This document shows positions 3,569-54,167 of a stretch of 64,000 nucleotides of DNA, piece after piece; within the stretch, counting starts at the first letter, position 1; every line of letters begins with the position of its first letter. The position numbers and the translations under genes were made by a program. The stretch spans positions 186,001 to 250,000 of the IMG/VR virus record IMGVR_UViG_3300031957_002643; one strand, 5' to 3'. The notes below the pieces were generated by a model. It did not search any database. It saw nothing but the letters and a program-made list of their open reading frames with translations, and was not told the DNA's origin.

Positions 3569-6500
3569 ATGACTGAACGTAGAGTATTTTCCCTATTACC
3601 AAAGTATTTTCAAACAGATGTCAATAAGCGCCTGCTTGGTGCTACTGATGATCTAGTATTTGAACCTGAAGATTTTGAGCGCATCGAAGGACAAATCGGT
3701 GACGATACAGATGTGTCCGAGTCTGATAAGGCTCGCTCTCCGTTCCTTCCAAATCTAAATCCAGAAGATGACAGATATCAACTTGCTCCATGTGTTGTGA
3801 CGTACAACAAAGATGGATCAGTTGCGAATGGATCATTCTATTCTGATTTGGTCGGTCATATTCTTGCTAATGGTGGTATCACGACCGATGAGTCTCGGTT
3901 ATTTGAATGTGAATATTTTTCATTCAATCCTCCTATCGTTGTTGATCATTGGGTTAATTTTTCCAAGTACTTCTGGACCGGTGACGGGACTGCCGCCGAC
4001 AACGGTGTCTATTTTGTAAAAGAACCAACGGCATCACAAACTGTTCTCTACTACGTCGAGACAGATGGATCAACGACGAAGAAATCTGTGATTTTGGATT
4101 CAAGCGGCCTTTTGGGTGCAGGCGCGACATATAATCCTTCTGGAAACACGACTGGCGCATTACGAGAAGATTGTACTGATGCAGAAAGAGCGATTTATCG
4201 TTGGGATGGTTCAGCATGGCAAATTGTTAATCTCTATCCGATTGATGATTTGGATAATCTACCAGCAGGAATTAATGCTGGTACCTACGTATATGTCGCT
4301 CGGGTCGGCAAAGAGTTTCAAAGACCAGTCATTTTTCACTACAGTTCGAAAGCCGGAAGATGGATTTCGAAGACACCAGTGATCGCCAACGTTGAACCGA
4401 CTAATCCAGTTGAGGGAATGATCTGGGAAGATTCGAGAACAGGCTCAACACGTAAGTTCTTGATTTACGATAACGAAAGTTGGGTTCCACTGACTTATAG
4501 TCATGTGACCACGATGACCGGAATTGGTACACCGGGAGAAGGTGATAATGTATATCGCTATTCTGCAAATGATTTCAGTGCGAGTGATGACCCGTGGCAG
4601 AAAGAAAGCTGGTGGGTGCATTACGAGGACTTCTCACCAACAGACAAATCCAAATATGCTGGAAACCAATCATCAAGACCTATTATCAAATTTTGGTCTA
4701 GTATTGAACAATACAATTTGTCGGATGCAATTGCCCAATATAATATCTATGGACTGAATACTAAAAACAATCCACTAAGAAAGCCGTTGTTTGAAGTATA
4801 CATGTTGGATGATGGTGCTATTGCAAAAGTCAGTACTTTGACTAATACTGATAGTACGCCTATTACTTTCAATGGTAATTCTATTTTTGAATACAAGGTC
4901 ACATCTTCCAATGTTGAAGATGAGATACTAAATCTGAAGCCAACTTATGACTCCACCGGGGAATTAGTATTTGATCTTACACTTGATAGTGCTCAATACT
5001 ACAAAGATAATGCACTGATCAAAGGATATCGTTTCTTTAAAGACACGTGGACGAATAAAATTCATTCTGTGTGGACGAAATCAGTTGATACTCTCTCATA
5101 TGATCAGAGTTCCAAGACTGTTCCTTTGAACTTGAGCAACAACCCAAACCACGACAATATTACCTCAATTAGTAGAAGTAATATTATCAACCATTACAGA
5201 AACATCATTTCATCTAACTCTACGGGTATTCCACTCGGTGATAACAGTTATAGATGGACCGATCATGATCCGGTCAACGGTGCCACTATTATTGATACTG
5301 AAGGGTCACTACTAATTCCAATGGCATTGGTTCAGGACGATCAATATGATCTTGCAGAATCGATCAGAATGATGGCTTTCGAGTACAATAGATTCATGCG
5401 CAGGTTCCACAATAGATTGAAAACATTGTGGAATTCTGGAAGCTATTCTACACCTGATGGAGTTTTGAGTGGAGTAACCGCAACCCAAATGGTTGATAAG
5501 GTCATTTCTGCGGTCACTCTTTTTTCCGATAGCAGTACGCCATTTTGGAATTCTGATATGGGAACCTATGTTGACGAAACGACATCAACGACGAAACCAA
5601 TTCTAATTCCACCATCAGTGTCACGGGTGGGGGCTGGTCCTGCGTATGCTCCTAGAAAATACACAACCGGGTCGATTACCTATATTCTATGCCATGATGG
5701 TACTGTATTGACGGCATATGGCGATGATCGTGATGATGTGATCCTGAATTTGGAAAACAGATTCTATGCCAAGGTTACAGCTAAGCGCAAGTTGGAAACA
5801 GTTAGCGAAAGTGCATTCCTTGATGGACACCAATTCTCATTGAGAAATTTCGTCGGTAATAGAACACCAGACACTAATATTGATGCTGTGGATGATATCG
5901 TAAACGATTATACGGCAGTCGTTTCACCGGCAGCAGACGATAGATATTATTCTAAAACTCATGGCTCATATGTTACGTACAATGGAAGTTCATGGGTCGT
6001 TAGAAAGGCTATCGCTGGTGATGTGTTCTTAGATAATGACGAAAACAAGACATACATCTTCAATGGTTTCGATATTTTTGAACTGAAAACGTATAACCGA
6101 AATGGATCGTTTGATTATTCCACAACCGATTACTATGCTGTCATTAGACGAGAATTTGAGAGATGGTACGTCGATCAAGGATTGGACCCAATAAGCAATT
6201 CTTCATACGATAGTTCGGACGAATGGACGTGGAATTATCACTCATTCGGATTTGAAGGGAATTGGGCCGGACTTTACAAGCGGGTCTATGGGACAGATCG
6301 TCCGCATGTTGCTCCATGGGAGATTCTAGGCTTTACTATAGAGCCTGAGTGGTGGACTGATGCTTATACGGCAGACAGCACGGACAGTGATGGTAATAAG
6401 CGGTACAATGCTTCAAACGGAATGTGGGCTGATTTAAAAACTGGAACATTGATTGCCGCTGAAGGCGTCGAAATCCCCACGAAGTTTCTTTTGAATAGTG

Positions 6501-9500
6501 ATGCTCCTGTTCCGGTGGATGCATCGGGGAATTTGGTTGATCCAATCACATCAGGATTAGTTTCACTTGACCAAGTATTAAACCCAGAACGGGATTGGAA
6601 CTATGGTGATTATAGTCCAATCGAACAACAGTTTAATAATTCATATCTGGGACCATATGCATATGCTCTGGCGGGTTATTTGATGAAGCCTGCCCGGTTT
6701 GTTGAATTCCTATGGTCAGATTATTCATTCACTATCGGTATGGACCAAAGTCTATTTGGTGGCCCTATCACAGTTGACGATGAAACACTAAAAAGACCGA
6801 AACTATCTGATCTAAAAATTCATTCTGAGGAAGAGAACCTTTCTAATCCCGGCATTAATGCATGGATTGCAGAGACATTGAACCTTTCACGCATTTCTCC
6901 CGTTGCATTTGGGGATATGTTGAGAAATACAAATGTTTCTCTTGGGTGGAAGACGAATGGGTTTATTGATAAGAAGTCAACAATAATCAAGACACCTTCT
7001 GGTGTCGAAATTCCATTCGAAGATGTACAATTGGCAGTCCATAAGGGTCTACCGGTTGAAAGTAAATTCCATTCTGGTGTCCAAATCCTAAAGCGCGGGT
7101 CAAAGTACCAAGTGTATGGCTATGATTACACCAATCCATTCTTCAAAATCAATTATTCAGCGAGACCATCTATAGGCGGCAGAACGACTATTGAAGAAAC
7201 CTATACGTCACAAGATGGTATTACATCATTTACCCTGACCAAGTTCAAAGTCGGAAGTGAAAATGATATCGCTAAGTTCACAGTTTTGATTGATGGTTTC
7301 AAGGTAGATTCTAAGTACATCAACATCACGAGCGCGACAACGTTTGAAATCTTTGATCCAAAATTATCATCAGGCCAACAAGTTTCTGCACAGTTAACAA
7401 CGACTTATACCAATCCAAGTACGAGAAGTCGCAAATTTAGTATAGGTGATACTGATTACTTCTATTACACATATAGAACCAACACTATCATTGAATACCC
7501 ATATGGTCATCAGTTCAACAGTCCACAGGAAGTAGTTGAGTTTTTAGCTGATCACGGAAACTATATGGAAGATCAAGGCTGGGAGTATGTTGCCGGTGAT
7601 GATTGGGTTGATGTGGCTAAGCGCTTTGCTTCATGGTCACAAACTGCAACCAATAATCAGATTTTCGTAGATGTACCCTCTGGTTTGGAATTAACACTGA
7701 AATCAAGCTTTGGTCATTTGGCCAATATTGAAAAACTGGTATATGGCGGATATAGCTTATTAGATATTGCTGCTCTTCCGATCAAAGAATTTGATACGTA
7801 CAGATTCGATGACAAGGTTACGGTCAAAACATCTGAATTGATTTTTGGACTACGTGCCAACATTGTTGATTACCAGCATGCAGTGTTTATTTCGAACAAA
7901 ACTCGCTTCAATGATTTGGTTTATGATCCATTCACGGGACTTAGACAGAAGAGATTAGAGATCAAATCATTACGAACCAAAGAATGGGCAGGCCGTATTG
8001 AGACGCCCGGATATGTCATTCTGGACGATGCACTAATTCCGAATTTTGAGAAATATACCAAAGACTTCATTCGTTATTATGACATGCATAACCCTGTATC
8101 TGATCCAAAATTCAGAGATCAGGCGTTCAATCTTTATGGATGGTACTATAAAGACTATATGCGTGAGATGAATATTAATGACATTCAAGCGTTGAAGTTT
8201 CACAAGAGTGCTATCCGTGAAAAGGGGACCAGACGTGCGGTTTCCGGTTTCTCTGTGGCCAAAGATAATGAAGCACCATTAGAAATTTATGAATGCTGGG
8301 CATGGAAAGAGGGCGAATTTGGCAAGACTCCTTATGATAATCCGATCCGGTTCAGCTTATTCGAAAGTGATTTCAGAAATAGAATTCAAGGCGTCAAGTT
8401 TGGAACAACTGACGAAAGCAATGTCATTGAGGTGACTAATTATGACCGCAGTGCATCTCATGACCGCTGGGTGGTAGCTCCACGTGGAACCAATTTCGAA
8501 TTCCCAATGACCGGAGATATCCCAAGCTCAGACTATGATATTAGACTGGTTGTATTGGAAGACGAAACAGTCAGCAAGAAAATGTTCCATTTTGATCCAT
8601 CTAACGGATTACACGAGCCGAATGCATATTCTCAGATTGATATTGAAACAGCATTTGATCCTGCATACTACAACAAGGGTACTGCTCGTACAGGAGAAGG
8701 GTTCGAATGGGCTGAAACTCGTGTTGGAACCATTTGGTGGGATACGACATACCGAGAATACGCGGACTATCACAACACCTCTCTCACGATTAAAGAAGCA
8801 GCAGAGCTATGGGGATCGTTGAAGAAGTTTTCTATCTCTAATACAACATTTGCTAATAGTTCTACCAAGCTTACATCTACGGTAGAGGCCGGACACAATT
8901 TTGTTGTTGATCAGGCAATTATTGTTGAAAACAAAGAGGGAAGAAGACTTAATGGTGTTATTGATGGTGTCAGTGGTAACTCAATAACTTACACCCTGTT
9001 TGATGGTCCAGAAACGATTGCTATTCTAAACAATCCTATTCTATTGTCGAACCTAGTCTCGATGACGAACCGTAGTATTGATGTTTATGAGTGGATAGAA
9101 TCCAAAGTTCCACCATCACAATTCACGTCAGAAGATGGTGACGTGAGTGTTTACAATCCATTGGACCCTTCATACACCGAAGTCACAAGATCGGATAATT
9201 CAAAGAGGTACTATTTTTGGGTCACGAACAGAAAAACAGTAGCTAATGGGAAATTCTTATCGATTTACCAGATTTCTAATCAGTTGAGAGACCCAACATC
9301 AAATCTTCTTCCATGGTTTGGTGTATTGAATAAGAATTCTATGATTTTCAATGCTTCATCGCTTGAGACTAGAAATGATCTATCCATTCAGGTGTTCACT
9401 TATCCAAAACAACACGAAGAACACGATCAGTGGGCCATTTTGGTCGAAGACGACAACCGTTCATACGTCAATGAATCGACCGTCGAAAAGATCATCGATA

Positions 9501-12442
9501 GTTTACAAGGATCAGACTATTATGGAAATACTGTACCGGCAGATTTCAGAACTGATCTGGACAAATATGGTTCTGAAGTAGGTCAGATCATTTTCAGTGA
9601 TGTGGATACGGCAAAAACAGTTTTCTTGAGTTCATTGAATCGAAATCTGAAGAAATACGATAAGGCACAGACATTAGGTTTCACAACTGCATTCCCGGCA
9701 GCGAGCAAATACCCAACATCATCCACCGGATATTGGGAAGAGACTCTTTATGACCTTGTTAACATCCCGCCTTCTCAGATTGTTAATTCTATATCCGAAC
9801 GTGATGCACTGATTGATTTGTTCATTGGTGATATAGTCAAAGTAAACACAAACCCATATGAAGTGTATCAGTACACATCTACAGGATGGGAGAAAGTACA
9901 AGCCGAAAATTCGTCTGCAAAAGTGAATTCCAACATTTTCACTTCACTTAGAAGTATAATGGAGCTGATCAAGGAATTCTTGTCTATCCAAGATTATAAT
10001 CGTGTTATGTTCGATATGATTTATGAGATGATGCGCCAACGCAATAATTGTAATTGGTGTTTCAAGACGAGTTATATTGATGTGATCAATACCGTCAATA
10101 CTGGCCAACCAAGCAGTACACCATTCGACGAAATGGACGTTGTTATCAAATCTGTAAATGATATGAAGCCATATCATTCAAAAATCAGACGAGCCATTGC
10201 ATCGCACGTGATCAATAATGGTGATGATGCTTTTGATTTAGCTGATATGACTGTCACGGACCAGAATTACACCAAAACCACGATTTTCACTGATAGATTA
10301 AGCTTCAATACATTTGATGACAATGCGTTTGATACGGAGCCATTCGATGTTAAAGAATTTGATTATCAGACATGGGATCGATCCGTTTTAGGTACTGATA
10401 ACTATGAAATCATTTCTACTTTCCAGAAAAATGGAAATCAGAAACGCTTCTACATTGGTAAGACCTTCCCGTACCTAGAACATTACATTACAGGAACAAA
10501 CCAAACAACTGGAAGATCAGAATTAGTCCCAATTTACAATCTTCTGTTTGACAATGAGGAATTGACGGTAGTATTCGAGACTGCACCGCCTAGTGGTGTC
10601 ACTTATCGGGTATATCGTGCGTTTGGTTATGCTTCACCGGGACTAATCACAAAAACAACTATTGATGATGATTTTGAAACTATCGATGCCACCTATCGTC
10701 ATGCCGTAGCTGTTGCGGGAGTTGGCTGGCAGGATATTGCCGGTGATGGGGTAGATGTTGATGATTTGGATGGTGGTGATGCGGACGAACGCATCAGAAG
10801 TGAAGTTTCTGATAAATCCATAATCGAAACAACGACTTACTACACCGGATTGTATGCTGGTTTTGATGCTGTGCCGCTTGATACCGCGCCATATGATACC
10901 GCACTGATGCCTACGGCAGAAACTATGTTCAGTGAAAACATCAACAATGATTATCAGTCATTGAGTTTGACCGAAACAATTAATCCTGTTCAAACAATCA
11001 CACTTGCCTCAGACACAAATAGCGGCGCAGTGTTTATGTTTACAGATGGCAGATTTACAGTTGGGCGAGTTCAAATCGATACAGGTTCAGGATATTCAGA
11101 TGTCGATTCTGCTGATTATGATGTTTTTGAAAACAATGCAATACGATTGTACCAAGCATTGTCATCTGGTGACAAGGTTAGGCTAAGAGCATCAAGAATT
11201 AATTTGAAATCAAACTTCTTCAGAATCGCCAACAATGATTTTGATGATTATGAAATTGATAATTCCGTTTTCATTATCAATGACTTACAGTACGCTAATG
11301 GTGCATCATTCGATATAGAATATTATCAGGATTCGTTGTACTCGTTGCGTGGTTCGAATGAATTATTTGGAACCAGACCAAATACAGTCGATGACATTCA
11401 GGATGATTACACACAACTCACGTCAACTACCAATTTGGTTGTCGGATACACAGTCATTAATAGAGCCGATAATAGAATTTATACTTGGGGTGGATCATCA
11501 TGGACCAGTGTTGCTGCCGGGGCTGGTTCATCATTCTGTGTAAGAAGTGAATTGCAGAGATATTACTTTGATGGTTCTGCTTGGGACGTGACGTACACGA
11601 TTGGGGATGGGACTGAAAATCTTATCTACAAATATAATGGTATTACGACAGCAAGTATCCTTGGTGGATCGGATTATGCCGTTGATTACAACTTGGCCTC
11701 ATGGAAAATCCAGCATATTTCTCCTCCAACCAACACCGACGACATAATGGGGTATTGGAATTTCAATTCCATCAAGGGGGAAGGTTATAATGGTGATATC
11801 TTCTATTGGGCTGATGCTTCCGGTAATGGAAACAATTTGATCCAATTGGATGATACCAAAACTCCAACCTATACTGAAAATAATGATCCAACGACCAATA
11901 CAGTTGATTTCACATCTGGAAAAACGTTCGTGGTCAACGATGCATCTTTAACAGGTGCATTTTCGTCCGATGGTGAACTAATTATTTCATTTTCTGTCAC
12001 TAGTGTTTCCTCGTTTACTCTTTTGAATAAAGCGAGCGAATGGGCCATCAGTATTGATACGGGTTCAGCAGGTGATTACAAAGTGATATTCACACACTTG
12101 TTTGATGGTACTAATGGTACTTGGGAAATTGAAGATACCGAACTCGCCACCGGCGACATCATAACAATAAAAATTACATATGATTCGAGTTCTGTGAATA
12201 ATAATCCAATCATCAATTTGAATGGTGTGAACAAGACATCAACTCAGACCTCAACCCCCGCTGGGACAGCAGGATCGGCAACATCTGATCTAACATTCAA
12301 TAATACTGGATCATTCAAATTAGTAAGTGTTCTAATTCTTGGTGTACCGGCAGAATATGAGAATATTATTTCAAATACTCAGATCACAACTGAGGATGGA
12401 AATACATTAAATACTGAAGACGATAACACGATTATTACATAA
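3569..12442 (+). CDS. Very large virion structural protein (baseplate wedge/hub-like) with C-terminal LamG/concanavalin-like domain
   Basis: 2957 aa. N-terminal LLPKYFQTDVNKRLL, repeated Y.WDG..W motifs, FD..PFD acidic repeats and a C-terminal W.DASGNGN beta-sandwich. Preceded by AATAAATA (3537-3544) and followed by baseplate/fibre genes. Confidence 0.7.
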   Translation: MTERRVFSLLPKYFQTDVNKRLLGATDDLVFEPEDFERIEGQIGDDTDVSESDKARSPFLPNLNPEDDRYQLAPCVVTYNKDGSVANGSFYSDLVGHILANGGITTDESRLFECEYFSFNPPIVVDHWVNFSKYFWTGDGTAADNGVYFVKEPTASQTVLYYVETDGSTTKKSVILDSSGLLGAGATYNPSGNTTGALREDCTDAERAIYRWDGSAWQIVNLYPIDDLDNLPAGINAGTYVYVARVGKEFQRPVIFHYSSKAGRWISKTPVIANVEPTNPVEGMIWEDSRTGSTRKFLIYDNESWVPLTYSHVTTMTGIGTPGEGDNVYRYSANDFSASDDPWQKESWWVHYEDFSPTDKSKYAGNQSSRPIIKFWSSIEQYNLSDAIAQYNIYGLNTKNNPLRKPLFEVYMLDDGAIAKVSTLTNTDSTPITFNGNSIFEYKVTSSNVEDEILNLKPTYDSTGELVFDLTLDSAQYYKDNALIKGYRFFKDTWTNKIHSVWTKSVDTLSYDQSSKTVPLNLSNNPNHDNITSISRSNIINHYRNIISSNSTGIPLGDNSYRWTDHDPVNGATIIDTEGSLLIPMALVQDDQYDLAESIRMMAFEYNRFMRRFHNRLKTLWNSGSYSTPDGVLSGVTATQMVDKVISAVTLFSDSSTPFWNSDMGTYVDETTSTTKPILIPPSVSRVGAGPAYAPRKYTTGSITYILCHDGTVLTAYGDDRDDVILNLENRFYAKVTAKRKLETVSESAFLDGHQFSLRNFVGNRTPDTNIDAVDDIVNDYTAVVSPAADDRYYSKTHGSYVTYNGSSWVVRKAIAGDVFLDNDENKTYIFNGFDIFELKTYNRNGSFDYSTTDYYAVIRREFERWYVDQGLDPISNSSYDSSDEWTWNYHSFGFEGNWAGLYKRVYGTDRPHVAPWEILGFTIEPEWWTDAYTADSTDSDGNKRYNASNGMWADLKTGTLIAAEGVEIPTKFLLNSDAPVPVDASGNLVDPITSGLVSLDQVLNPERDWNYGDYSPIEQQFNNSYLGPYAYALAGYLMKPARFVEFLWSDYSFTIGMDQSLFGGPITVDDETLKRPKLSDLKIHSEEENLSNPGINAWIAETLNLSRISPVAFGDMLRNTNVSLGWKTNGFIDKKSTIIKTPSGVEIPFEDVQLAVHKGLPVESKFHSGVQILKRGSKYQVYGYDYTNPFFKINYSARPSIGGRTTIEETYTSQDGITSFTLTKFKVGSENDIAKFTVLIDGFKVDSKYINITSATTFEIFDPKLSSGQQVSAQLTTTYTNPSTRSRKFSIGDTDYFYYTYRTNTIIEYPYGHQFNSPQEVVEFLADHGNYMEDQGWEYVAGDDWVDVAKRFASWSQTATNNQIFVDVPSGLELTLKSSFGHLANIEKLVYGGYSLLDIAALPIKEFDTYRFDDKVTVKTSELIFGLRANIVDYQHAVFISNKTRFNDLVYDPFTGLRQKRLEIKSLRTKEWAGRIETPGYVILDDALIPNFEKYTKDFIRYYDMHNPVSDPKFRDQAFNLYGWYYKDYMREMNINDIQALKFHKSAIREKGTRRAVSGFSVAKDNEAPLEIYECWAWKEGEFGKTPYDNPIRFSLFESDFRNRIQGVKFGTTDESNVIEVTNYDRSASHDRWVVAPRGTNFEFPMTGDIPSSDYDIRLVVLEDETVSKKMFHFDPSNGLHEPNAYSQIDIETAFDPAYYNKGTARTGEGFEWAETRVGTIWWDTTYREYADYHNTSLTIKEAAELWGSLKKFSISNTTFANSSTKLTSTVEAGHNFVVDQAIIVENKEGRRLNGVIDGVSGNSITYTLFDGPETIAILNNPILLSNLVSMTNRSIDVYEWIESKVPPSQFTSEDGDVSVYNPLDPSYTEVTRSDNSKRYYFWVTNRKTVANGKFLSIYQISNQLRDPTSNLLPWFGVLNKNSMIFNASSLETRNDLSIQVFTYPKQHEEHDQWAILVEDDNRSYVNESTVEKIIDSLQGSDYYGNTVPADFRTDLDKYGSEVGQIIFSDVDTAKTVFLSSLNRNLKKYDKAQTLGFTTAFPAASKYPTSSTGYWEETLYDLVNIPPSQIVNSISERDALIDLFIGDIVKVNTNPYEVYQYTSTGWEKVQAENSSAKVNSNIFTSLRSIMELIKEFLSIQDYNRVMFDMIYEMMRQRNNCNWCFKTSYIDVINTVNTGQPSSTPFDEMDVVIKSVNDMKPYHSKIRRAIASHVINNGDDAFDLADMTVTDQNYTKTTIFTDRLSFNTFDDNAFDTEPFDVKEFDYQTWDRSVLGTDNYEIISTFQKNGNQKRFYIGKTFPYLEHYITGTNQTTGRSELVPIYNLLFDNEELTVVFETAPPSGVTYRVYRAFGYASPGLITKTTIDDDFETIDATYRHAVAVAGVGWQDIAGDGVDVDDLDGGDADERIRSEVSDKSIIETTTYYTGLYAGFDAVPLDTAPYDTALMPTAETMFSENINNDYQSLSLTETINPVQTITLASDTNSGAVFMFTDGRFTVGRVQIDTGSGYSDVDSADYDVFENNAIRLYQALSSGDKVRLRASRINLKSNFFRIANNDFDDYEIDNSVFIINDLQYANGASFDIEYYQDSLYSLRGSNELFGTRPNTVDDIQDDYTQLTSTTNLVVGYTVINRADNRIYTWGGSSWTSVAAGAGSSFCVRSELQRYYFDGSAWDVTYTIGDGTENLIYKYNGITTASILGGSDYAVDYNLASWKIQHISPPTNTDDIMGYWNFNSIKGEGYNGDIFYWADASGNGNNLIQLDDTKTPTYTENNDPTTNTVDFTSGKTFVVNDASLTGAFSSDGELIISFSVTSVSSFTLLNKASEWAISIDTGSAGDYKVIFTHLFDGTNGTWEIEDTELATGDIITIKITYDSSSVNNNPIINLNGVNKTSTQTSTPAGTAGSATSDLTFNNTGSFKLVSVLILGVPAEYENIISNTQITTEDGNTLNTEDDNTIIT

Positions 12443-46777: not shown

Positions 46778-46854
<77 letters not shown>

Positions 46855-47289: not shown

Positions 47290-47592
47290 TCATATGTCCT
47301 CGTAAGTCAATGATAGGTTAATTTTGTCCCCTGTTACAATAATATCCATAATAATTTCATCGGTTGCTAATGATGTGACATGTACATCGTGACCGGGGAA
47401 CAGTTTCATGACTTGTGTTTCTACGTCTTCATCAAACATGTTCCATAAATCTAGAGAGATTAGCAAACTCATCAAATCCCTAATTGGATTTTGGTTTGAA
47501 TATTGATCTTCTGTGAGCCGGATCATGTACCTATTGTCTGGAAACAATTCGTACATGGGGATCATGGTTACTTCTTCTTCACGGTATTCCAT
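47290..47592 (-). CDS. Hypothetical protein
   Basis: 100-aa ORF with SD GAGGA. Confidence 0.6.
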   Translation of the reverse strand: MEYREEEVTMIPMYELFPDNRYMIRLTEDQYSNQNPIRDLMSLLISLDLWNMFDEDVETQVMKLFPGHDVHVTSLATDEIIMDIIVTGDKINLSLTYEDI

Positions 47593-48269
47593 TTCAATAT
47601 GTCCTCGTATAAGATATCATCATTTGTGTTGCTTTTGAATGCTTCTAGTGTCTTCTGGGAGTTTTTATCGTCTACTGCATCCTTTCCTTTTTTCACGTTA
47701 TGATTTTGTCGAATATGTCTTGCAAAATCTGACGTAAAGAATGGGAATGATCTCAATGCTCTGTTGAGATGTTTACAAACAATGCCTCGCTGTTTCGGGT
47801 TTCTGACATTTGGCGGTCTATCTTCTGGAACGATTGCAGCATCAATCTGTGTCAAAAGATACTGGTACCCCCAAAATAAAAACGAAGGACATGTACAATG
47901 AAGCATCAAGTCTCCTTGAAGCATCATTAATCTGGCTCTGTCGATTGGACTGAACTCGGTTTCATCAATGAAGGCATCCCAATCATTGATCTTGAATTGG
48001 TTCAAATATGTAATGTTGTTATCTTTGTGTTGGGAGGATTTGATGTTAAAAATCAATGAGTTCTCGTCAAATCCCTTCAACCGGACACCCTCAAGCGCAT
48101 TAGCACGAACACGCTGTTTAAGAAAATCATTGTCGATAAACATTTGAATTTCTTTGTATGTCGCTTCCTTGATGATCTCATTATCTGGTTTATCCAAATG
48201 ATGATGTTCACAAAGGGAGTGATAGTTCGTGACTAAAAAGGGTTTTCCGTCTACTAGTTTAACGTTCAT
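47568..48269 (-). CDS. SWIM-like Zn-finger protein
   Basis: HCTCPSF....Y and P..RNP...G.VCKHL. Confidence 0.7.
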   Translation of the reverse strand: MNVKLVDGKPFLVTNYHSLCEHHHLDKPDNEIIKEATYKEIQMFIDNDFLKQRVRANALEGVRLKGFDENSLIFNIKSSQHKDNNITYLNQFKINDWDAFIDETEFSPIDRARLMMLQGDLMLHCTCPSFLFWGYQYLLTQIDAAIVPEDRPPNVRNPKQRGIVCKHLNRALRSFPFFTSDFARHIRQNHNVKKGKDAVDDKNSQKTLEAFKSNTNDDILYEDILKWNTVKKK

Positions 48270-48597
48270 CTACCGATGGTCCTGCTGGCGCTTCTGGCGT
48301 TCTTGGCAGGGCGGTAGGAGCATTCTCAGACTTATGGAAAATGTACCTACGCCATGCATAGTTCAACATTGTAGCTGCTGCGGATACGGACGCACCGATA
48401 ACGGCAACGATCTGGTCTGGGTGATAGACCATGACGTATGCTACAACGACGATATTTATCCATACTAGAAGCTTTGACAAACTTAGAACTGTTCTTCCCG
48501 GCTCTAAAAGATTAAGAAATCTCAATAGTTTGAAAACAAAATTATTCTTCCAGTAAAGACCTTCTTCTTCTGGTGTTGGTAATCCTGATGTAGACAT
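48259..48597 (-). CDS. Putative holin-like membrane protein
   Basis: 2 TM segments and a basic patch, directly downstream of the amidase. Confidence 0.5.
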   Translation of the reverse strand: MSTSGLPTPEEEGLYWKNNFVFKLLRFLNLLEPGRTVLSLSKLLVWINIVVVAYVMVYHPDQIVAVIGASVSAAATMLNYAWRRYIFHKSENAPTALPRTPEAPAGPSVDER

Positions 48598-48609
48598 GTG
48601 TGTGATCCT

Positions 48610-49455
48610 TTAACGTTGGAACAAACGGCTAAACCATCCTCGTTTGTTCGACGTAGTATTTACGGGATCAGACACAACGGCAGGTTCATCTTCAACTACC
48701 CGTGGGGGGAAGTTGATAGGTTCATCTGCCTCATCATTATCGCGGCCAGCGATCATTTCTCTCATACGATCAATACCACTTAGTGGACCCGGATCACGTT
48801 TTCTTGATGTGATTTCGTCGTGACCAACCAATTTAGAATCATAGTGATGGCAAATCGCTTGTGATAGATTGGTCATCACATTGATTTGTTCTTTGGAATA
48901 AGGAATCCATGCCGAAGCTGGTTCGTGTAGATACATATGATGCGTCCGTTCGACAATATCTGGTCTAGCCTTGGCTTGTGGCCAGCGAGCAGTGATGATT
49001 TGATCGTTTACTTTGAGTGGATTATAGTATACATCCCCATACCATGTCTTATAAACGCCATGTTCAATAATTTCCAATGGCCCCGGATTGATTACTTCAA
49101 CACCGCACGAATAGCTATTCAATCCGTTATATCCATCATACGATGACTGACCAGCATGCCAGCATTTTTCATTTAGGGGTGCCATTTGTACTAATCGGCC
49201 ATCAGTGTCCAACACCAGATGAACATCTGCTTTGGTATCTTGATTCTTCATATAATTGACAGTTCCATCAATACCATAACGACCAGCAGTGTAATGATAG
49301 ACGAAGAATTTCACATCGATCTGTGCTCTACCAGAACGCTTATCGTGTGAAATGAATGGTACTGGCTTACCATTACGGTGAACCATATGGTTCACAATTG
49401 TAAACACATCATCGTCTGCGATGTTTTTCATTTCGGGTAAATCTTTTATAGGCAT
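48610..49455 (-). CDS. N-acetylmuramoyl-L-alanine amidase (Amidase_2), putative endolysin
   Basis: YHYTAG, H...D.DG...Q, WHAG.S, N.YS.GVE.IN, GHDEI and RK.DPGP. Confidence 0.9.
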   Translation of the reverse strand: MPIKDLPEMKNIADDDVFTIVNHMVHRNGKPVPFISHDKRSGRAQIDVKFFVYHYTAGRYGIDGTVNYMKNQDTKADVHLVLDTDGRLVQMAPLNEKCWHAGQSSYDGYNGLNSYSCGVEVINPGPLEIIEHGVYKTWYGDVYYNPLKVNDQIITARWPQAKARPDIVERTHHMYLHEPASAWIPYSKEQINVMTNLSQAICHHYDSKLVGHDEITSRKRDPGPLSGIDRMREMIAGRDNDEADEPINFPPRVVEDEPAVVSDPVNTTSNKRGWFSRLFQR

Positions 49456-49486
49456 AGTAATATTCCTTTATGGAATATTACTTATA
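49456..49486 (-). promoter_or_regulatory. Late promoter TATAAGTA inside an 11-bp hairpin masking the endolysin RBS
   Basis: AGTAATATTCC-ATAAA-GGAATATTACT-ATG on the minus strand. Confidence 0.7.
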
Positions 49487-49487
49487 A

Positions 49488-49796
49488 TCAGCCAGCAAAA
49501 TATTTAACTAACAGTCCAACAACAAGGGCGGAAATTGCACCGGCGAGGCCACCGAATAGTGAATTCCACACTTTACCGCGAGTTTCTTGAATCACCAATC
49601 TCTTTTCTAGAGATGAGATTTTTCCTTCTGCGTTTTTGATCGAGACAGTGTAATCGGGTAGCGATTTCAGACGTTCATCAATACGAGCAACAGAGATAGC
49701 CATCATATTGACTTGCTCTTCCATCTTACTAATTTTGCTGTCCATCTTTTCCATGATAGAGGCCTGTTGTCTAAAAAGTTCTAGTTCGGTGGTCAT
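49488..49796 (-). CDS. Coiled-coil protein with C-terminal TM (XhlA-like lysis-cassette membrane protein)
   Basis: Heptad repeat (ARIDERL, LEKRL) then a Gly/Ala-rich TM. Confidence 0.6.
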   Translation of the reverse strand: MTTELELFRQQASIMEKMDSKISKMEEQVNMMAISVARIDERLKSLPDYTVSIKNAEGKISSLEKRLVIQETRGKVWNSLFGGLAGAISALVVGLLVKYFAG

Positions 49797-49798
49797 AT

Positions 49799-50242
49799 TT
49801 ATTCAGGCCCCTTGTCATCCTCGTCCCAATCTGGGGGTAATACAGCACCAATACCGGCAACATAGCTTTGGTCTTTAGACGTAAAATACCATTTCCATCC
49901 TTCGAAATATCCACATGCTTTTGTTCTCGGTGAATGGAATTTTTCTTTAACGAAAACCTGACCTATAGTCATAGCTTCGAGGTCATTTTTTCTAAATTGT
50001 TCGGCAATATGCTCTGGCCAAAATACCGAATCTGGCTGATTGATATAATCGCCTTCCCATGGACCAACAATATGTCGCATATACGCATTAGACAGCTCGA
50101 CCATAATAAAACGATCTGTGTTTTTATCGTAACGCTTGATCCAAGCCAAACCGGGGAATGTTTGAATAAATGTTCGAAGAGCCGAAATATGGTAATCGGT
50201 CTCTTCGATCATCTTTTTGAATTCTTCTAAATCTTGTTTCAT
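49799..50242 (-). CDS. Stand-alone PAS-domain protein
   Basis: LRTFIQTFPGLAWIK, N.AY, DYINQPD..FWPEHIAEQFRKND..AM..G and terminal VAGIG match the PAS_4 pattern. Confidence 0.75.
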   Translation of the reverse strand: MKQDLEEFKKMIEETDYHISALRTFIQTFPGLAWIKRYDKNTDRFIMVELSNAYMRHIVGPWEGDYINQPDSVFWPEHIAEQFRKNDLEAMTIGQVFVKEKFHSPRTKACGYFEGWKWYFTSKDQSYVAGIGAVLPPDWDEDDKGPE

Positions 50243-50332
50243 TTCTTCTCTGTTGGCTTATACCTGTCAATAGTATTTACCACAGGACTATATAACCAAT
50301 GAGAATAAATGGTTGTCGGGTATTAGAAATTA

Positions 50333-50578: not shown

Positions 50579-51736
50579 TTATAATTCAAAATCACTAAAA
50601 CTATCTTCATCGATGTCTTTATTAACCTTACCGATGACATAGGACTCAATCTCTGATTCCTGTGGTGCAACCTGACGACTTTTAGAAGCGATCCAAGATT
50701 CCGTCCATGGAAGAGGATTGTTTGTCGGGCTTTCGTGTCTTGGTTTCAATCCAACAGCACGGATACGTTGGGTTCCAATCCAATCCACATAATCACAAAG
50801 AAGTTTCTCATTGAGACCAAGAATAGAACCATCCTTGAACAAATAGGATGCCCACTCTTTTTCTTGGCGCATCGCCACTTCATACATTTTAAGGCATTCT
50901 TTTTCAGTCTCCTTTTTAATTTTGGAGAATGTTGGATCATCTTGAATGAGTGCAGTTCTCAGAAGTTTCTGAGAAATAGACAGATGCAAATTTTCATCAC
51001 GTGCAATCAGCTTGATTAGCTTGGCGTTGCCTTCCATCTTCTTATTCTCGGCAAATGCCCAAGAGCATGCAAAGCTGACATAAAAGCGAATACCTTCAAG
51101 GATATTAATAGCCGTCACACATAACCAGAACTTCTTCTTTAGTTCGTATTCGCTGATGGTAAAGTTTTCATTGGTGTATTCGTTTGCTCTTTTGGAAGAT
51201 CGAACCTCATGATTTCCTTCACCGAACAATTCCCACAGTTTTGCATACTTGATGAAATCATCATAATATTTTGTGATATCATCAGAACATTCCACAATCT
51301 GTTTGACATCCATCATTCCGTCGAACACAGCAGATGGATTGGGATACACATTCCGAATGATATGTGTATATGAATCACTGTGGATAGTTTCAAAGAACCC
51401 CCATGTTTCGATGAGGGGTTCCAATTCAGGGACAGAAGCATAGGGGAGTAGTGCCTGATTGACACCACGCCCCTGAATGCTATCCAACAGAATTTGTCTC
51501 TTCAGATTTGAAGTGAAGATGTGCTGTTCGTGTGGCTGAAGATTTGAGAAATCTTTTCTGTCCGTATTCAAATCAACTTCATCTGCCGTCCAAAAGAACC
51601 CTCTCATCTTTCTGTAAAGATGATCGAATTCCTTGTATTTCAGGGTTTCATATCGAGCGATGTCAACTCCACCGTTCGGATCAAAAAACAAATTGGCATC
51701 TAAGTGACTGATTTCACGTTTCTTAAAAATAGACAT
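50579..51736 (-). CDS. nrdB: Ribonucleotide reductase class Ia beta subunit
   Basis: FFW..EV, LDSIQGR, ETIHS.SY, LEGIRFYVSF, RDENLH and VAPQE.E..SY. Confidence 0.96.
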   Translation of the reverse strand: MSIFKKREISHLDANLFFDPNGGVDIARYETLKYKEFDHLYRKMRGFFWTADEVDLNTDRKDFSNLQPHEQHIFTSNLKRQILLDSIQGRGVNQALLPYASVPELEPLIETWGFFETIHSDSYTHIIRNVYPNPSAVFDGMMDVKQIVECSDDITKYYDDFIKYAKLWELFGEGNHEVRSSKRANEYTNENFTISEYELKKKFWLCVTAINILEGIRFYVSFACSWAFAENKKMEGNAKLIKLIARDENLHLSISQKLLRTALIQDDPTFSKIKKETEKECLKMYEVAMRQEKEWASYLFKDGSILGLNEKLLCDYVDWIGTQRIRAVGLKPRHESPTNNPLPWTESWIASKSRQVAPQESEIESYVIGKVNKDIDEDSFSDFEL

Positions 51737-54042
51737 TATAGGACGCAACTCTCACAGACTTCATCTTCTTGTTGTGGTTCGTCTGCAACCGTATCGGTAG
51801 CAGTTTCGATGGTTTCATCTTTCTGACCATCGTAGGTGTTATGATAGTACAACTGCTTGCCGCCGTATTTGTAGAATTCCAGCAAATCATTGATAAGCAT
51901 CTTCATAGACAATGCGCCTTCTTCGAAGTGTTCCGGGTTGTAGGAAACATTCGTTGAAATGCCCTGATCGATATATTTTTGGAGAACAGCCATCACTTGA
52001 AGATATCCCTTTGGTGACTTTTGATCCCAAAGCATGTCGTACTTGTTCTTGAGTTTGTGGATTTCAGGAACAACTTGTTTCAATACACCGTGCTTGGATA
52101 CTTTTTCAGAAACAAGACCACGAGGCGGCTCAACGCCATTTGTAGCATTGGCGATTTGTGCAGATGTTTCCGAAGGCATCAACGCCATCAATGTAGAATT
52201 ACGAATCCCATATGTCTTTAGATCACGTCTTAGTTCCTCCCATGGGAATCGCTCTTGGTGCTCGACTAAGGAATCAACATTCTTGTTGCGGGTATCAATA
52301 GGAAGCACACCATCTGCATATTTGGTCATATGCAGGCCTTCACATGCTCCCTTTTCTTTTGCCAGATCAATAGAGGCACGAATCAGATAGTAAGACCACG
52401 CTTCTGTATATTCATCCACCAAGTCGAGTGCATCAGAATCGTATTTCTTGTCGTTCTTGGCGAGGAAATACGCAAAGTTGATAATGCCTACGCCAAGAGG
52501 TCTAAACAGCCGTGTGTGGACCTCTGCGGCCTTTACAGGGTATGATTGGTAGTCGAGCATATTGTCCAATGCTCTGACTGCCAGTGCAGCCGGTCTTTCG
52601 AAATCTTCGGGCTTCTTGATCTTACCCCAATTGATTGCCGAAAGAGTACACAGTGCAATCCATCCTTCGGGATCGTCAATATGCTGTAACGGCTTCGTAG
52701 GTAGATCAATCTCCACACAAAGATTGGTTTGTTTGATTGGCGCTAGTTCTGGTTTGAACGAACCGTGATTGTTGGCATGATCGATATTCTGGATGTAGAT
52801 ACGTCCAGTTTCTTTTCTCTCGGTTGCAATGGAAGAGAAAACATCAATAGCAGACATTGACTGTTTTCTGATAGTTGGATCGTTTTCATATTTCTCATAC
52901 AACGTCTCAAAGAGATCATTATCACCGGAGTAAAAAGCTTCTGCAAGATCAGGCACATCTTCTGGCGAGAAAAAATGAATTTCTCCCTTTGAAATCAATC
53001 GCTTATAAGCAAGTCTGTTCAATTGAACGCAATAGTCCAATTGGCGAATACGGTTCATTTCGGTACCTTTATTGTTCTTGAGAACGATCAAAGACTCGAA
53101 TTCATAATGCCAGAACGGGTATGAAATTGTTGCAGCACCGCCACGAATGCCACCTTGGGAACAGCTCTTTACTGCGCTTTGAAACGAGCGGATGAAAGGT
53201 AGTAACCCTGTGGACTCAGCGTCACCGCCTCGAATTTCGGCACCAAGTGCACGGATACTTCCGACTTCAATACCAAGACCAGCGCTATTTGAGATGTAGC
53301 GATAGATTGATGACGTTGTTGCCTCAATCGATTTCATTGTGTCATCACATGAGACGAGCACGCATGATGAAAACTGGCGTGTTGGTTTTCTAGCCTTGGC
53401 CATAATCGGCGTTGGTAGAGATACCTTTTGTGTGGAAATGATGTCGTAATATTCTTTGATCAAATCCATACGAATGGATTTGTCTTCATTGATAAACATC
53501 GTAGCAGCAATGAGGAGATATGCCATTTGTGGAGTTTCAAAGAACTCATTAGTGACACGATTGCGAACAAGGTACTTGCCACGGAATTGTTCCATGGCAA
53601 CAAAGCTCAAATCAAAATCGCGCTTGTGTTTGATGATGCTTTCAAATGCTTCGAAGTCATCATCGTCATAGGATGTCAAAATATCAGAATCATATACGCC
53701 ATGCTGAACATTGCGAACTACAAGGTCTTTGACTGAAAACGGAACAGGACCGCCATATACTTCTTTGCGAAGATGGTAATTGATCAGACGCGCAGCAACA
53801 TATTGATAGTTTGGTGTATCTTCCGAAATCAAATCAGAAGCAGCACGAATGATGGTTTCGTGGATTTGTGATGTGGTGATGCCGTCAGAAAATTGTAACT
53901 GTGCACGCAGTTCGATTTCAGAAACAGAAACGCCTGTTAAATCTTCACAGGCCCAAAACAATACTTTGTGGATTTTGTCTAGATCGAGCGGTTCTTTGTT
54001 TCCGTTTCTCTTAATAACTTGAATATCAGATGCCGGTGGCAT
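51736..54042 (-). CDS. nrdA: Ribonucleotide reductase class Ia alpha subunit
   Basis: ATP cone VIKRNG, QFSSC, TNLCVEI, LMPSETS, NGVEP and terminal CESC; SD GGAG before 54042. Confidence 0.96.
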   Translation of the reverse strand: MPPASDIQVIKRNGNKEPLDLDKIHKVLFWACEDLTGVSVSEIELRAQLQFSDGITTSQIHETIIRAASDLISEDTPNYQYVAARLINYHLRKEVYGGPVPFSVKDLVVRNVQHGVYDSDILTSYDDDDFEAFESIIKHKRDFDLSFVAMEQFRGKYLVRNRVTNEFFETPQMAYLLIAATMFINEDKSIRMDLIKEYYDIISTQKVSLPTPIMAKARKPTRQFSSCVLVSCDDTMKSIEATTSSIYRYISNSAGLGIEVGSIRALGAEIRGGDAESTGLLPFIRSFQSAVKSCSQGGIRGGAATISYPFWHYEFESLIVLKNNKGTEMNRIRQLDYCVQLNRLAYKRLISKGEIHFFSPEDVPDLAEAFYSGDNDLFETLYEKYENDPTIRKQSMSAIDVFSSIATERKETGRIYIQNIDHANNHGSFKPELAPIKQTNLCVEIDLPTKPLQHIDDPEGWIALCTLSAINWGKIKKPEDFERPAALAVRALDNMLDYQSYPVKAAEVHTRLFRPLGVGIINFAYFLAKNDKKYDSDALDLVDEYTEAWSYYLIRASIDLAKEKGACEGLHMTKYADGVLPIDTRNKNVDSLVEHQERFPWEELRRDLKTYGIRNSTLMALMPSETSAQIANATNGVEPPRGLVSEKVSKHGVLKQVVPEIHKLKNKYDMLWDQKSPKGYLQVMAVLQKYIDQGISTNVSYNPEHFEEGALSMKMLINDLLEFYKYGGKQLYYHNTYDGQKDETIETATDTVADEPQQEDEVCESCVL

Positions 54043-54167
54043 TCTATGTCTCTCCGTCGATATGGGTAATAGGGTTTCATTACAAGAATAGGACATTCTC
54101 GCTTCCATTTTTTGCTCTCTTTCCATAAGTTACTTTTATAAGGTGAAAATACTTAGACCTGATCGAT

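Follow-up and report, generated by a model that had tools for sequence, protein, structure and literature searches.

A predicted PAS-fold protein in a phage lysis cassette and the recurrence of its family beside phage lysis genes

Why would a phage place a small protein with a sensory fold, but without a kinase or other output domain, directly in front of the genes that open its host cell? This question is raised by a 64,000-nucleotide stretch (the window) of the marine jumbo phage record IMGVR_UViG_3300031957_002643, positions 186,001 to 250,000. An earlier note, made from the sequence alone, described a lysis cassette in which a late-type promoter motif is followed by a soluble PAS protein, a coiled-coil membrane protein, an Amidase_2 endolysin and a holin-like gene. 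We find that this observation holds. All four open reading frames lie on the minus strand of the window, at 49,799-50,242 (147 aa), 49,488-49,796 (102 aa), 48,610-49,455 (281 aa) and 48,259-48,597 (112 aa), and the ATG of the 102-aa gene lies exactly 2 nt after the stop of the 147-aa gene. The four genes are conserved in the same order in three related phage contigs (L029, L031 and L033; contigs carrying the family are designated here by L numbers) at 50-76% identity, and so are real genes. Megablast of the cassette against cultured phages found no match. Among the sequencing runs listed, two seawater DNA runs and no RNA run hold this phage.

Is the 147-aa protein a PAS domain? Pfam (no family at E <= 1) and PHROG scans of this sequence gave nothing, and a word-indexed homologue search recovered only the protein itself. 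However, an exhaustive phmmer search of 1.84 billion representative sequences gave 190 hits, including multi-PAS sensor kinases, and 15 of 35 aligned homologues matched PAS_4 (PF08448; best E 4.2e-13). The ESM Atlas neighbours are also PAS_4 proteins. Although a single-sequence AlphaFold2 prediction was uninformative (pLDDT 43.8), the alignment-based model (pLDDT 93.5) has an N-terminal amphipathic helix (residues 2-27) followed by a beta-beta-alpha-alpha-alpha-beta-beta-beta core, with strands at 32-39, 44-50, 95-103, 110-122 and 125-135 and helices at 52-59, 71-74 and 77-93. This is the flanked five-stranded antiparallel sheet expected of the PAS fold, and Foldseek matched it to PAS, LOV, FixL and ArcB structures with probability 1.0 (TM 0.6-0.75 for the best matches, ArcB and short stand-alone proteins such as PpSB1-LOV). 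ArcB, the best reviewed fold match, has the same order of TM, leucine zipper helix and cytoplasmic PAS as the fused phage proteins described below, and short LOV proteins likewise lack an output domain.

The alignment of the family gives no indication of a known cofactor. The invariant columns are K36 and D71, and the near-invariant columns are M47, Y66, G68, W75, A80, F83, D87 and G130. No Cys or His is conserved; there is no LOV cysteine motif, and no haem-ligand His, such as the proximal His on the F-alpha helix of FixL, is conserved. A Cys in the last strand is frequent in the family but is Ala in the window protein. Thus, the PAS domain may be only an interaction module.

The other three genes can be assigned with varying certainty. 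The 102-aa protein has an N-terminal coiled coil (about residues 1-75, with perfect a/d heptad occupancy around 20-49) and a single hydrophobic segment at about 76-102, as in a tail-anchored protein. Its orthologues are 55-64% identical, including residues 1-14, which supports the upstream start codon. The 281-aa protein is a predicted Amidase_2 endolysin (PF01510; E 1.8e-20, 74 bits against a cut-off of 26) that also matches PHROG amidase/endolysin families; an HYTAG segment and GHDEITSRKRDPG resemble AmpD-type zinc-ligand motifs, and the protein has a cationic amphipathic C-terminal tail. Neither it nor the 147-aa protein has a hydrophobic segment, and the amidase lacks a signal or SAR segment, consistent with a cytoplasmic location. 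The 112-aa protein, which starts 13 nt after the amidase stop codon and whose end overlaps the start of the next gene by 11 nt, has two hydrophobic segments (about 34-56 and 60-81) and a charged, proline-rich tail with 5 K/R and 4 D/E, and is 61-72% identical in relatives. This is the architecture of a class II holin, but because no Pfam or PHROG holin family was matched and its Atlas neighbours are small, unnamed viral proteins, its assignment as holin-like rests on architecture only and hole formation is inferred.

Is the cassette expressed late? The motif GGTAAATA lies at 50,274-50,281 on the minus strand, 37 nt upstream of the PAS start codon. Neither this exact octamer (6 copies in 335 kb) nor the T4 late promoter octamer TATAAATA (18 copies) is enriched, and a sigma-70 promoter scan found no more sites than shuffled sequences (22 against 21). 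In contrast, the degenerate [AG]TAAATA, of which GGTAAATA is one instance, is a promoter-like motif of this phage: 45% of TAAATA copies lie in the 7% of the genome that is intergenic, and the degenerate motif occurs within 60 nt upstream of 48 genes, compared to 2 control windows placed inside genes. These genes include those for the portal, large terminase, tail sheath, tail fibre and baseplate hub. GTAAATA is retained upstream of the PAS gene in L029, L031 and L033.

The main result comes from gene neighbourhoods. In 12 of 14 informative phage lineages, a peptidoglycan hydrolase lies within three genes of the PAS-family gene, and these hydrolases belong to six families: Amidase_2 (the window, L029, L031 and L033), Phage_lysozyme (L003, L007, L008, L009, L024 and L017), Glyco_hydro_19 (L025 and Cellulophaga phage phi14:2), Peptidase_M15_3 (L002 and L014), Peptidase_M15_4 (L011) and, from the annotation of the record, GH108 (Chryseobacterium phage MA9V-2). 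Small 2-5-TM holin-like proteins, together with spanin-like N-terminal-TM coiled-coil proteins and lipoproteins, usually lie alongside. Two lineages, the L020 group and the Brevundimonas jumbo phages, show no hydrolase within the flank that was retrieved. Two outcomes that the earlier note had named in advance as contradicting its reading, a fold other than PAS and a linkage not conserved in relatives, were both examined and neither was found; the linkage extends well beyond close relatives. An alternative interpretation of this linkage is that the pair has another late, membrane-associated role, such as superinfection exclusion, envelope remodelling or assembly at the membrane, and neighbours lysis genes only because both are late genes at the end of the structural block. 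Consistent with this, the pair follows tail-fibre-like genes in many contigs, two lineages lack a nearby hydrolase, and one Atlas structure match for the 102-aa protein is a SieB-like cluster at low TM. However, the upstream neighbours change (nrd/glutaredoxin genes in the clade of the window, tail fibres elsewhere, and the endolysin itself in L002 and L011), whereas the lysis genes stay although the hydrolase family changes six times. In L002 and L011, the pair lies between the endolysin and the holin- and spanin-like genes. We therefore consider this alternative unlikely.

The PAS subfamily occurs in two forms. Every standalone PAS gene is followed by a gene for a coiled-coil protein with a C-terminal TM, whose start lies between a 20-nt overlap and a 5-nt gap. 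In other phages, an N-terminal TM and coiled coil are fused to the PAS domain. Of 149 representative hits, 36 are fused and 39 are standalone, and the family motif occurs in 41 short proteins but in none of 70 long cellular PAS proteins. At least 6 switches between the two forms are forced on the PAS tree. The standalone protein has no signal peptide, and K/R residues are richer after the TM than before it in 23 fused proteins, against 10, suggesting that the PAS domain is cytoplasmic. A scan of genome contigs with the fused-form alignment found no prophage copy. In L029 and L033, the PAS protein at the same position belongs to the other deep branch of the family while the anchor remains 55-57% identical, which either argues against a highly sequence-specific PAS-anchor interface or reflects very fast divergence. 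It is also conceivable that the PAS protein is a soluble regulator of gene expression or of a host enzyme, for instance by titrating a host PAS-containing kinase, with no relation to the adjacent membrane protein. The similarity to host multi-sensor kinases and the common heterodimerisation of PAS domains would fit this view. Co-folding of two PAS chains with two chains of the 102-aa protein returned no answer; it gave no support for binding, but is not evidence against it, and we do not use it either way. The repeated independent fusion to a TM and coiled coil and the invariant coupling to an anchor gene in split loci make this possibility very unlikely.

Our preferred explanation, which we regard as about as likely as not, is that the 147-aa and 102-aa proteins form a two-piece, membrane-tethered cytoplasmic module of the lysis system. 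In this view, they are made late from an RTAAATA-type promoter in one translationally coupled run with the endolysin and the holin-like protein, and the coiled coil holds the PAS domain at the inner face of the cytoplasmic membrane. There the module would modulate holin accumulation or triggering, as an antiholin-like brake or as a trigger, with the PAS domain as the input for a ligand, a redox or energy state, or a protein partner. Other phages would build the same device as one polypeptide. The analysis establishes the fold, the gene order, the tight coupling, the fusion variants and the recurrent linkage to lysis genes, whereas binding between PAS and anchor, action on the holin, sensing of any ligand, amidase activity and the sign of the effect are inferred from sequence and predicted structure alone. 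The interpretation offered in the earlier note, that the PAS protein may couple lysis timing to a cytoplasmic signal by binding the adjacent membrane protein as a ligand-gated switch, is therefore supported only in part: the pairing and the linkage to lysis are conserved, but binding, ligand and gating remain hypothetical.

Alternatively, the module could be an obligatory effector of the membrane step rather than a sensor or regulator, resembling a releasin or XhlA or, in the fused form, a one-TM holin with a large globular domain, with PAS serving only as an oligomerisation or scaffold domain. In phi14:2 (NC_021806), the fused gene g078, annotated "PAS fold protein", sits where a holin gene is usually found, overlapping the start of the GH19 endolysin gene with no small multi-TM gene between them. 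This protein and gene 249 of MA9V-2, annotated "regulatory protein", belong to the same subfamily (family HMM E 2e-17 and 9e-20; 209 and 202 aa), and their records give no lysis role. Both are of the fused form, unlike the split form of the window, and both lie next to the endolysin gene. Phage Mu gp25 releasin is a membrane-tethered cytoplasmic protein with N-out, C-in topology, like that inferred for the fused form, and is encoded within 5 genes of diverse endolysins (PMC9239132). However, it has no PAS domain, and Mu lacks a holin and uses a SAR endolysin, whereas the amidase of the window has no SAR or signal segment to be released. No DUF2730 (PF10805) match was found for the 102-aa protein, its orthologues or the fused proteins, a search of the genome gave only a sub-threshold hit elsewhere, and the TM of the 102-aa protein is C-terminal, not N-terminal as in DUF2730. 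Protein-language-model neighbours of the 102-aa protein include clusters of XhlA, which in Bacillus PBSX is a small protein with an N-terminal helical part and a C-terminal TM, encoded just upstream of a holin and an Amidase_2-type lysin in the xhlA-xhlB-xlyA operon. Yet the match to XhlA (PF10779) is far below the cut-off (E 0.25, 12 bits against 34.7), orthologues score E 0.015 and 0.6, and the genome-wide search gave no hit at this gene; XhlA belongs to a Gram-positive system and is not known to have a PAS partner. Given that most loci also carry a separate 2-5-TM holin-like gene, we consider the effector reading doubtful, although the absence of a conserved cofactor motif fits it.

Lysis timing is the main life-history trait that a lytic phage can tune, and its known regulators are few and specific to particular lineages: lambda S107, T4 RI and RIII, P1 LydB and Mu releasin. 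In T4, the antiholins RI and RIII, the latter cytoplasmic, are small accessory proteins that set lysis time by binding a domain of holin T (PMC11413866). There the signal is superinfection sensed in the periplasm, the r genes are not known to form a compact cassette, and no sequence or fold relation to the proteins described here was shown. The GAF-like domain that the earlier note ascribed to holin T was not confirmed in that paper, and T-type holins appear only as weak fold matches to the PAS protein (TM 0.38-0.40, E 0.16-0.19). We found no paper in the literature searched that links PAS domains to phage lysis. The module recurs in the lysis cassettes of marine jumbo phages, freshwater phages, a crAss-like Cellulophaga phage and a Chryseobacterium phage, at least two of these carriers being cultured, and would be the first lysis component built on a classical sensory domain. 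This raises the possibility that phages read intracellular state before committing to lysis. More speculatively, and only tentatively, the subfamily could be a widespread, undescribed class of lysis clock component, a membrane-tethered cytoplasmic sensor, split or fused, that reads a host metabolite or the redox/energy state and passes this reading through a coiled coil and a TM helix to the holin, so that lysis is timed to host physiology. The family would also give annotators a new marker for lysis cassettes in metagenomic phages and a natural template for ligand-controlled lysis switches.

A further feature of the cassette concerns the junction between the anchor and endolysin genes. An 11-bp RNA hairpin at 49,456-49,482 on the minus strand (ViennaRNA, -14.7 kcal/mol) lies between the stop of the 102-aa gene and the amidase ATG and contains the amidase Shine-Dalgarno sequence. 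It is conserved in 4 relatives with 2 compensatory pairs, which fits translational coupling along the cassette.

The window covers bases 186001-250000 of a 335,552-bp virus record with direct terminal repeats and a GC content of 42%. The sequence is present in two seawater metagenome runs and has no close relative among cultured phages at the DNA level. The lysis cassette lies on the minus strand, directly downstream of nrdA, nrdB and a glutaredoxin gene on the same strand. An earlier note had described a promoter-like motif followed by four genes, and this observation was confirmed, with the four ORFs at exactly the positions it gave. The gene for a 102-aa protein starts 2 nt after the stop of the gene for the 147-aa PAS protein (49799-50242, minus strand). 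The 102-aa protein has hydrophobic residues at 8 of 8 a/d positions around residues 20-49 and a single C-terminal hydrophobic segment (residues 76-102), and is therefore a tail-anchored coiled-coil protein, referred to here as the anchor. The 281-aa protein is a clear Amidase_2 (E 1.8e-20) that also matches PHROG amidase and endolysin families and has no hydrophobic segment, so by sequence it is a cytoplasmic endolysin. It ends in a cationic amphipathic tail (...NKRGWFSRLFQR; 48610-48690, minus strand; hydrophobic moment 1.0). No spanin-like genes were seen next to the cassette. This tail might help to breach the outer membrane. The 112-aa protein has two hydrophobic segments and a charged tail, consistent with a holin-like protein, but matches no named holin family in Pfam or PHROGs or among its ESM Atlas neighbours.

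Three related contigs (L029, L031 and L033) keep the order glutaredoxin, PAS-position gene, anchor, Amidase_2, 2-TM protein and 233-aa protein, with identities of 55-76% for the neighbours and 50% or lower for the PAS-position gene. An 11-bp hairpin between the stop of the 102-aa gene and the amidase ATG (49456-49482, minus strand; L029:6307-6347, L031:6283-6327, L033:6052-6095) contains the amidase Shine-Dalgarno sequence. The hairpin is conserved in four relatives, with two compensatory base-pair changes, and may couple endolysin translation to translation of the upstream gene.

The exact octamer GGTAAATA upstream of the cassette occurs only six times in the genome, and the T4 box TATAAATA occurs 18 times. 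The core TAAATA behaves very differently, as 45% of its copies lie in the 7% of the genome that is intergenic. [AG]TAAATA occurs within 60 nt upstream of 48 of 485 crudely called genes, compared to 2 control windows placed inside genes. Ten of those genes were scanned, and they include the portal, the large terminase, the tail sheath, tail fibres and a baseplate hub. In addition, giant ORFs of 2957 aa and 4535 aa (window 3569-12442, plus strand, and genome 305382-318989) are each preceded by the RTAAATA motif 30-36 nt upstream of the start codon. GTAAATA followed by C or T is kept between the glutaredoxin and PAS genes in all three relatives, although the rest of the spacer has diverged. The description of this site in the earlier note as a late-type promoter is thus a fair reading, with the motif redefined as RTAAATA. 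A generic sigma-70 scan found nothing above shuffled sequences.

Pfam and PHROGs gave no match for the 147-aa protein. However, an exhaustive phmmer search found 190 proteins at E <= 0.001, including many short proteins of 138-165 aa at about 40% identity and long sensor proteins matched in several stretches. Of 35 aligned homologues, 15 hit PAS_4. AlphaFold2 gave no usable model without an alignment (pLDDT 43.8), but with the alignment it produced a model with pLDDT 93.5, in which a long N-terminal helix is followed by a canonical PAS core. Foldseek matches this model to PAS, LOV and FixL structures in the PDB at probability 1.0 and TM 0.6-0.75, and among Swiss-Prot models the best match is the ArcB PAS domain together with its preceding zipper helix (TM 0.69). 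The ESM Atlas agrees with this assignment. The invariant residues are K36 and D71, and no LOV cysteine motif or haem histidine is conserved. T4-type class III holins, for example from Proteus phage Stubb, appear among the BFVD matches of the model only as weak fold matches (TM 0.38-0.40, E 0.16-0.19). These matches bear on the remark in the earlier note that T4 holin T uses a GAF-like sensory domain, but are too weak to claim a relationship.

Our main finding is that the genomic context of this PAS family is conserved. We fetched contigs encoding family members by exact look-up and by pattern scans and examined the neighboring genes. In the split form, a PAS gene of about 140-190 aa is followed by a gene for a protein of 95-185 aa with an N-terminal coiled coil and a C-terminal TM, the start of which lies between a 20-nt overlap and a 5-nt gap. 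The order in contig L002 is Peptidase_M15_3, PAS, anchor, a 64-aa 2-TM protein, an N-terminal-TM protein and a lipoprotein with a lipobox, and in L011 it is Peptidase_M15_4, PAS, anchor, a 2-TM protein and an N-terminal-TM coiled-coil protein. In L014 the order is PAS, anchor, a coiled-coil protein, Peptidase_M15_3 and a 2-TM protein, whereas in L003, L005, L007, L008 and L009 it is PAS, anchor, a multi-TM protein and Phage_lysozyme. In the fused form, represented by 36 of 149 representative hits, a single protein of 170-300 aa contains an N-terminal TM, a coiled coil and the PAS domain. The fused gene is followed in L024 by a 5-TM protein, a TM protein, Phage_lysozyme and an N-terminal-TM protein, in L025 by a 4-TM protein and Glyco_hydro_19, and in L017 by a 2-TM protein and Phage_lysozyme. 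Contig L047 is nearly identical to L024 but carries a different endolysin gene at the same slot: Phage_lysozyme in L024 (L024:6233-6781) corresponds in L047 (L047:1667-2236) to a 189-aa protein without a Pfam hit that resembles the GH19-type lysin of L025. The fused PAS gene and the membrane-protein genes stay the same, representing cassette mosaicism around a fixed PAS module.

Two cultured phages carry the fused form. In Cellulophaga phage phi14:2, a crAss-like phage, g078 ('PAS fold protein') overlaps the start of the GH19 endolysin g077, and in Chryseobacterium phage MA9V-2 the gene, recorded as a 'regulatory protein', lies two genes after a GH108 lysin. Neither record assigns a role to the protein. 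All of these proteins match the family HMM at E <= 1e-17. Two lineages show no hydrolase within the flank that was fetched, namely the L020 group of contigs, where a 2-TM protein precedes the fused gene and nrdA lies nearby, and the Brevundimonas jumbo phages, which keep the PAS-anchor pair. The linkage is therefore seen in 12 of 14 informative lineages and involves six hydrolase families, five of which were tested here by Pfam, while GH108 is taken from the annotation of the record. The upstream neighbors vary and include nrd genes, tail fibres and the endolysin itself; the lysis genes are the constant.

The family is a distinct PAS subfamily, as the motif W.K...M...Y.GK.D is present in 41 short proteins and in none of the 70 long cellular hits. 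On a maximum-likelihood tree of 95 PAS domains, the split and fused labels are clustered (11 changes, compared to 31 in shuffles) but not monophyletic, and well-supported branches force at least six changes, although a few 'split' labels on that tree are probably weakly hydrophobic or truncated fused proteins. In the fused proteins, K/R residues are richer after the TM than before it in 23 cases against 10. Together with the absence of a signal peptide on the standalone PAS, this places the PAS domain in the cytoplasm. In the jumbo-phage contigs L029 and L033, the PAS gene at the position corresponding to window 49799-50242 encodes 184-191 aa (L029:5424-5999 and L033:5189-5743) and falls in the other deep clade of the family, while the anchor stays 55-57% identical and the flanking genes 55-76% identical. 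One interpretation of this finding is gene replacement within the family. Alternatively, it may reflect very fast divergence. In either case, it calls for caution about the mechanism considered below.

The anchor does not reach significance against XhlA (12 bits, compared to a cut-off of 34.7) or against DUF2730, the Mu releasin family, and both are architectural or functional analogues only. Mu gp25 has been described as a membrane-tethered cytoplasmic protein with N-out, C-in topology that is always within five genes of the endolysin and is paired with diverse endolysin classes (PMC9239132). This is the closest published parallel to the pattern seen here.

Our sequence analyses establish that a cytoplasmic PAS domain is repeatedly placed at the membrane, in cis or through a coupled partner gene, inside lysis cassettes that, as read from the promoter motif, are expressed late. 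From this we infer that the module acts on the membrane step of lysis, which it might either delay or trigger, and that the PAS domain supplies an input, which could be a small molecule, redox or a protein. As a supporting parallel, the order TM, zipper, PAS in the fused form mirrors ArcB, in which a membrane-proximal PAS reads the respiratory state. The proposal in the earlier note of a ligand-gated lysis switch, in which the PAS protein binds the adjacent membrane protein, is partly supported, in that ligand sensing and PAS-anchor binding remain inferences; co-folding of the two proteins gave no answer, which is not evidence either way. Full-text literature searches found no paper linking PAS domains to holins, endolysins, antiholins or lysis cassettes. 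Accessory lysis regulators and helpers are already known, and we consider the module to be probably one of these, differing in its use of a PAS domain.

Other features were observed around the cassette. A 233-aa gene (47568-48269, minus strand) overlaps the end of the holin-like gene by 11 nt and is 75-76% identical in relatives. Its product carries a CxC...CxH (SWIM-like) motif and matches PHROG 1722, 'tail protein' (E 7.7e-12). A single tRNA-Pro (TGG) gene (46778-46854, minus strand) lies about 1.4 kb downstream of the cassette on the same strand. The NrdA genes of two relatives, L031 (L031:1229-3970) and the related contig L032 (L032:1175-3970), carry an intein (Intein_splicing, 913-931 aa), which is absent from NrdA of the window (796 aa; 51736-54126), and L031 also has a TnpB-like gene (Cas12f1-like_TNB) nearby.
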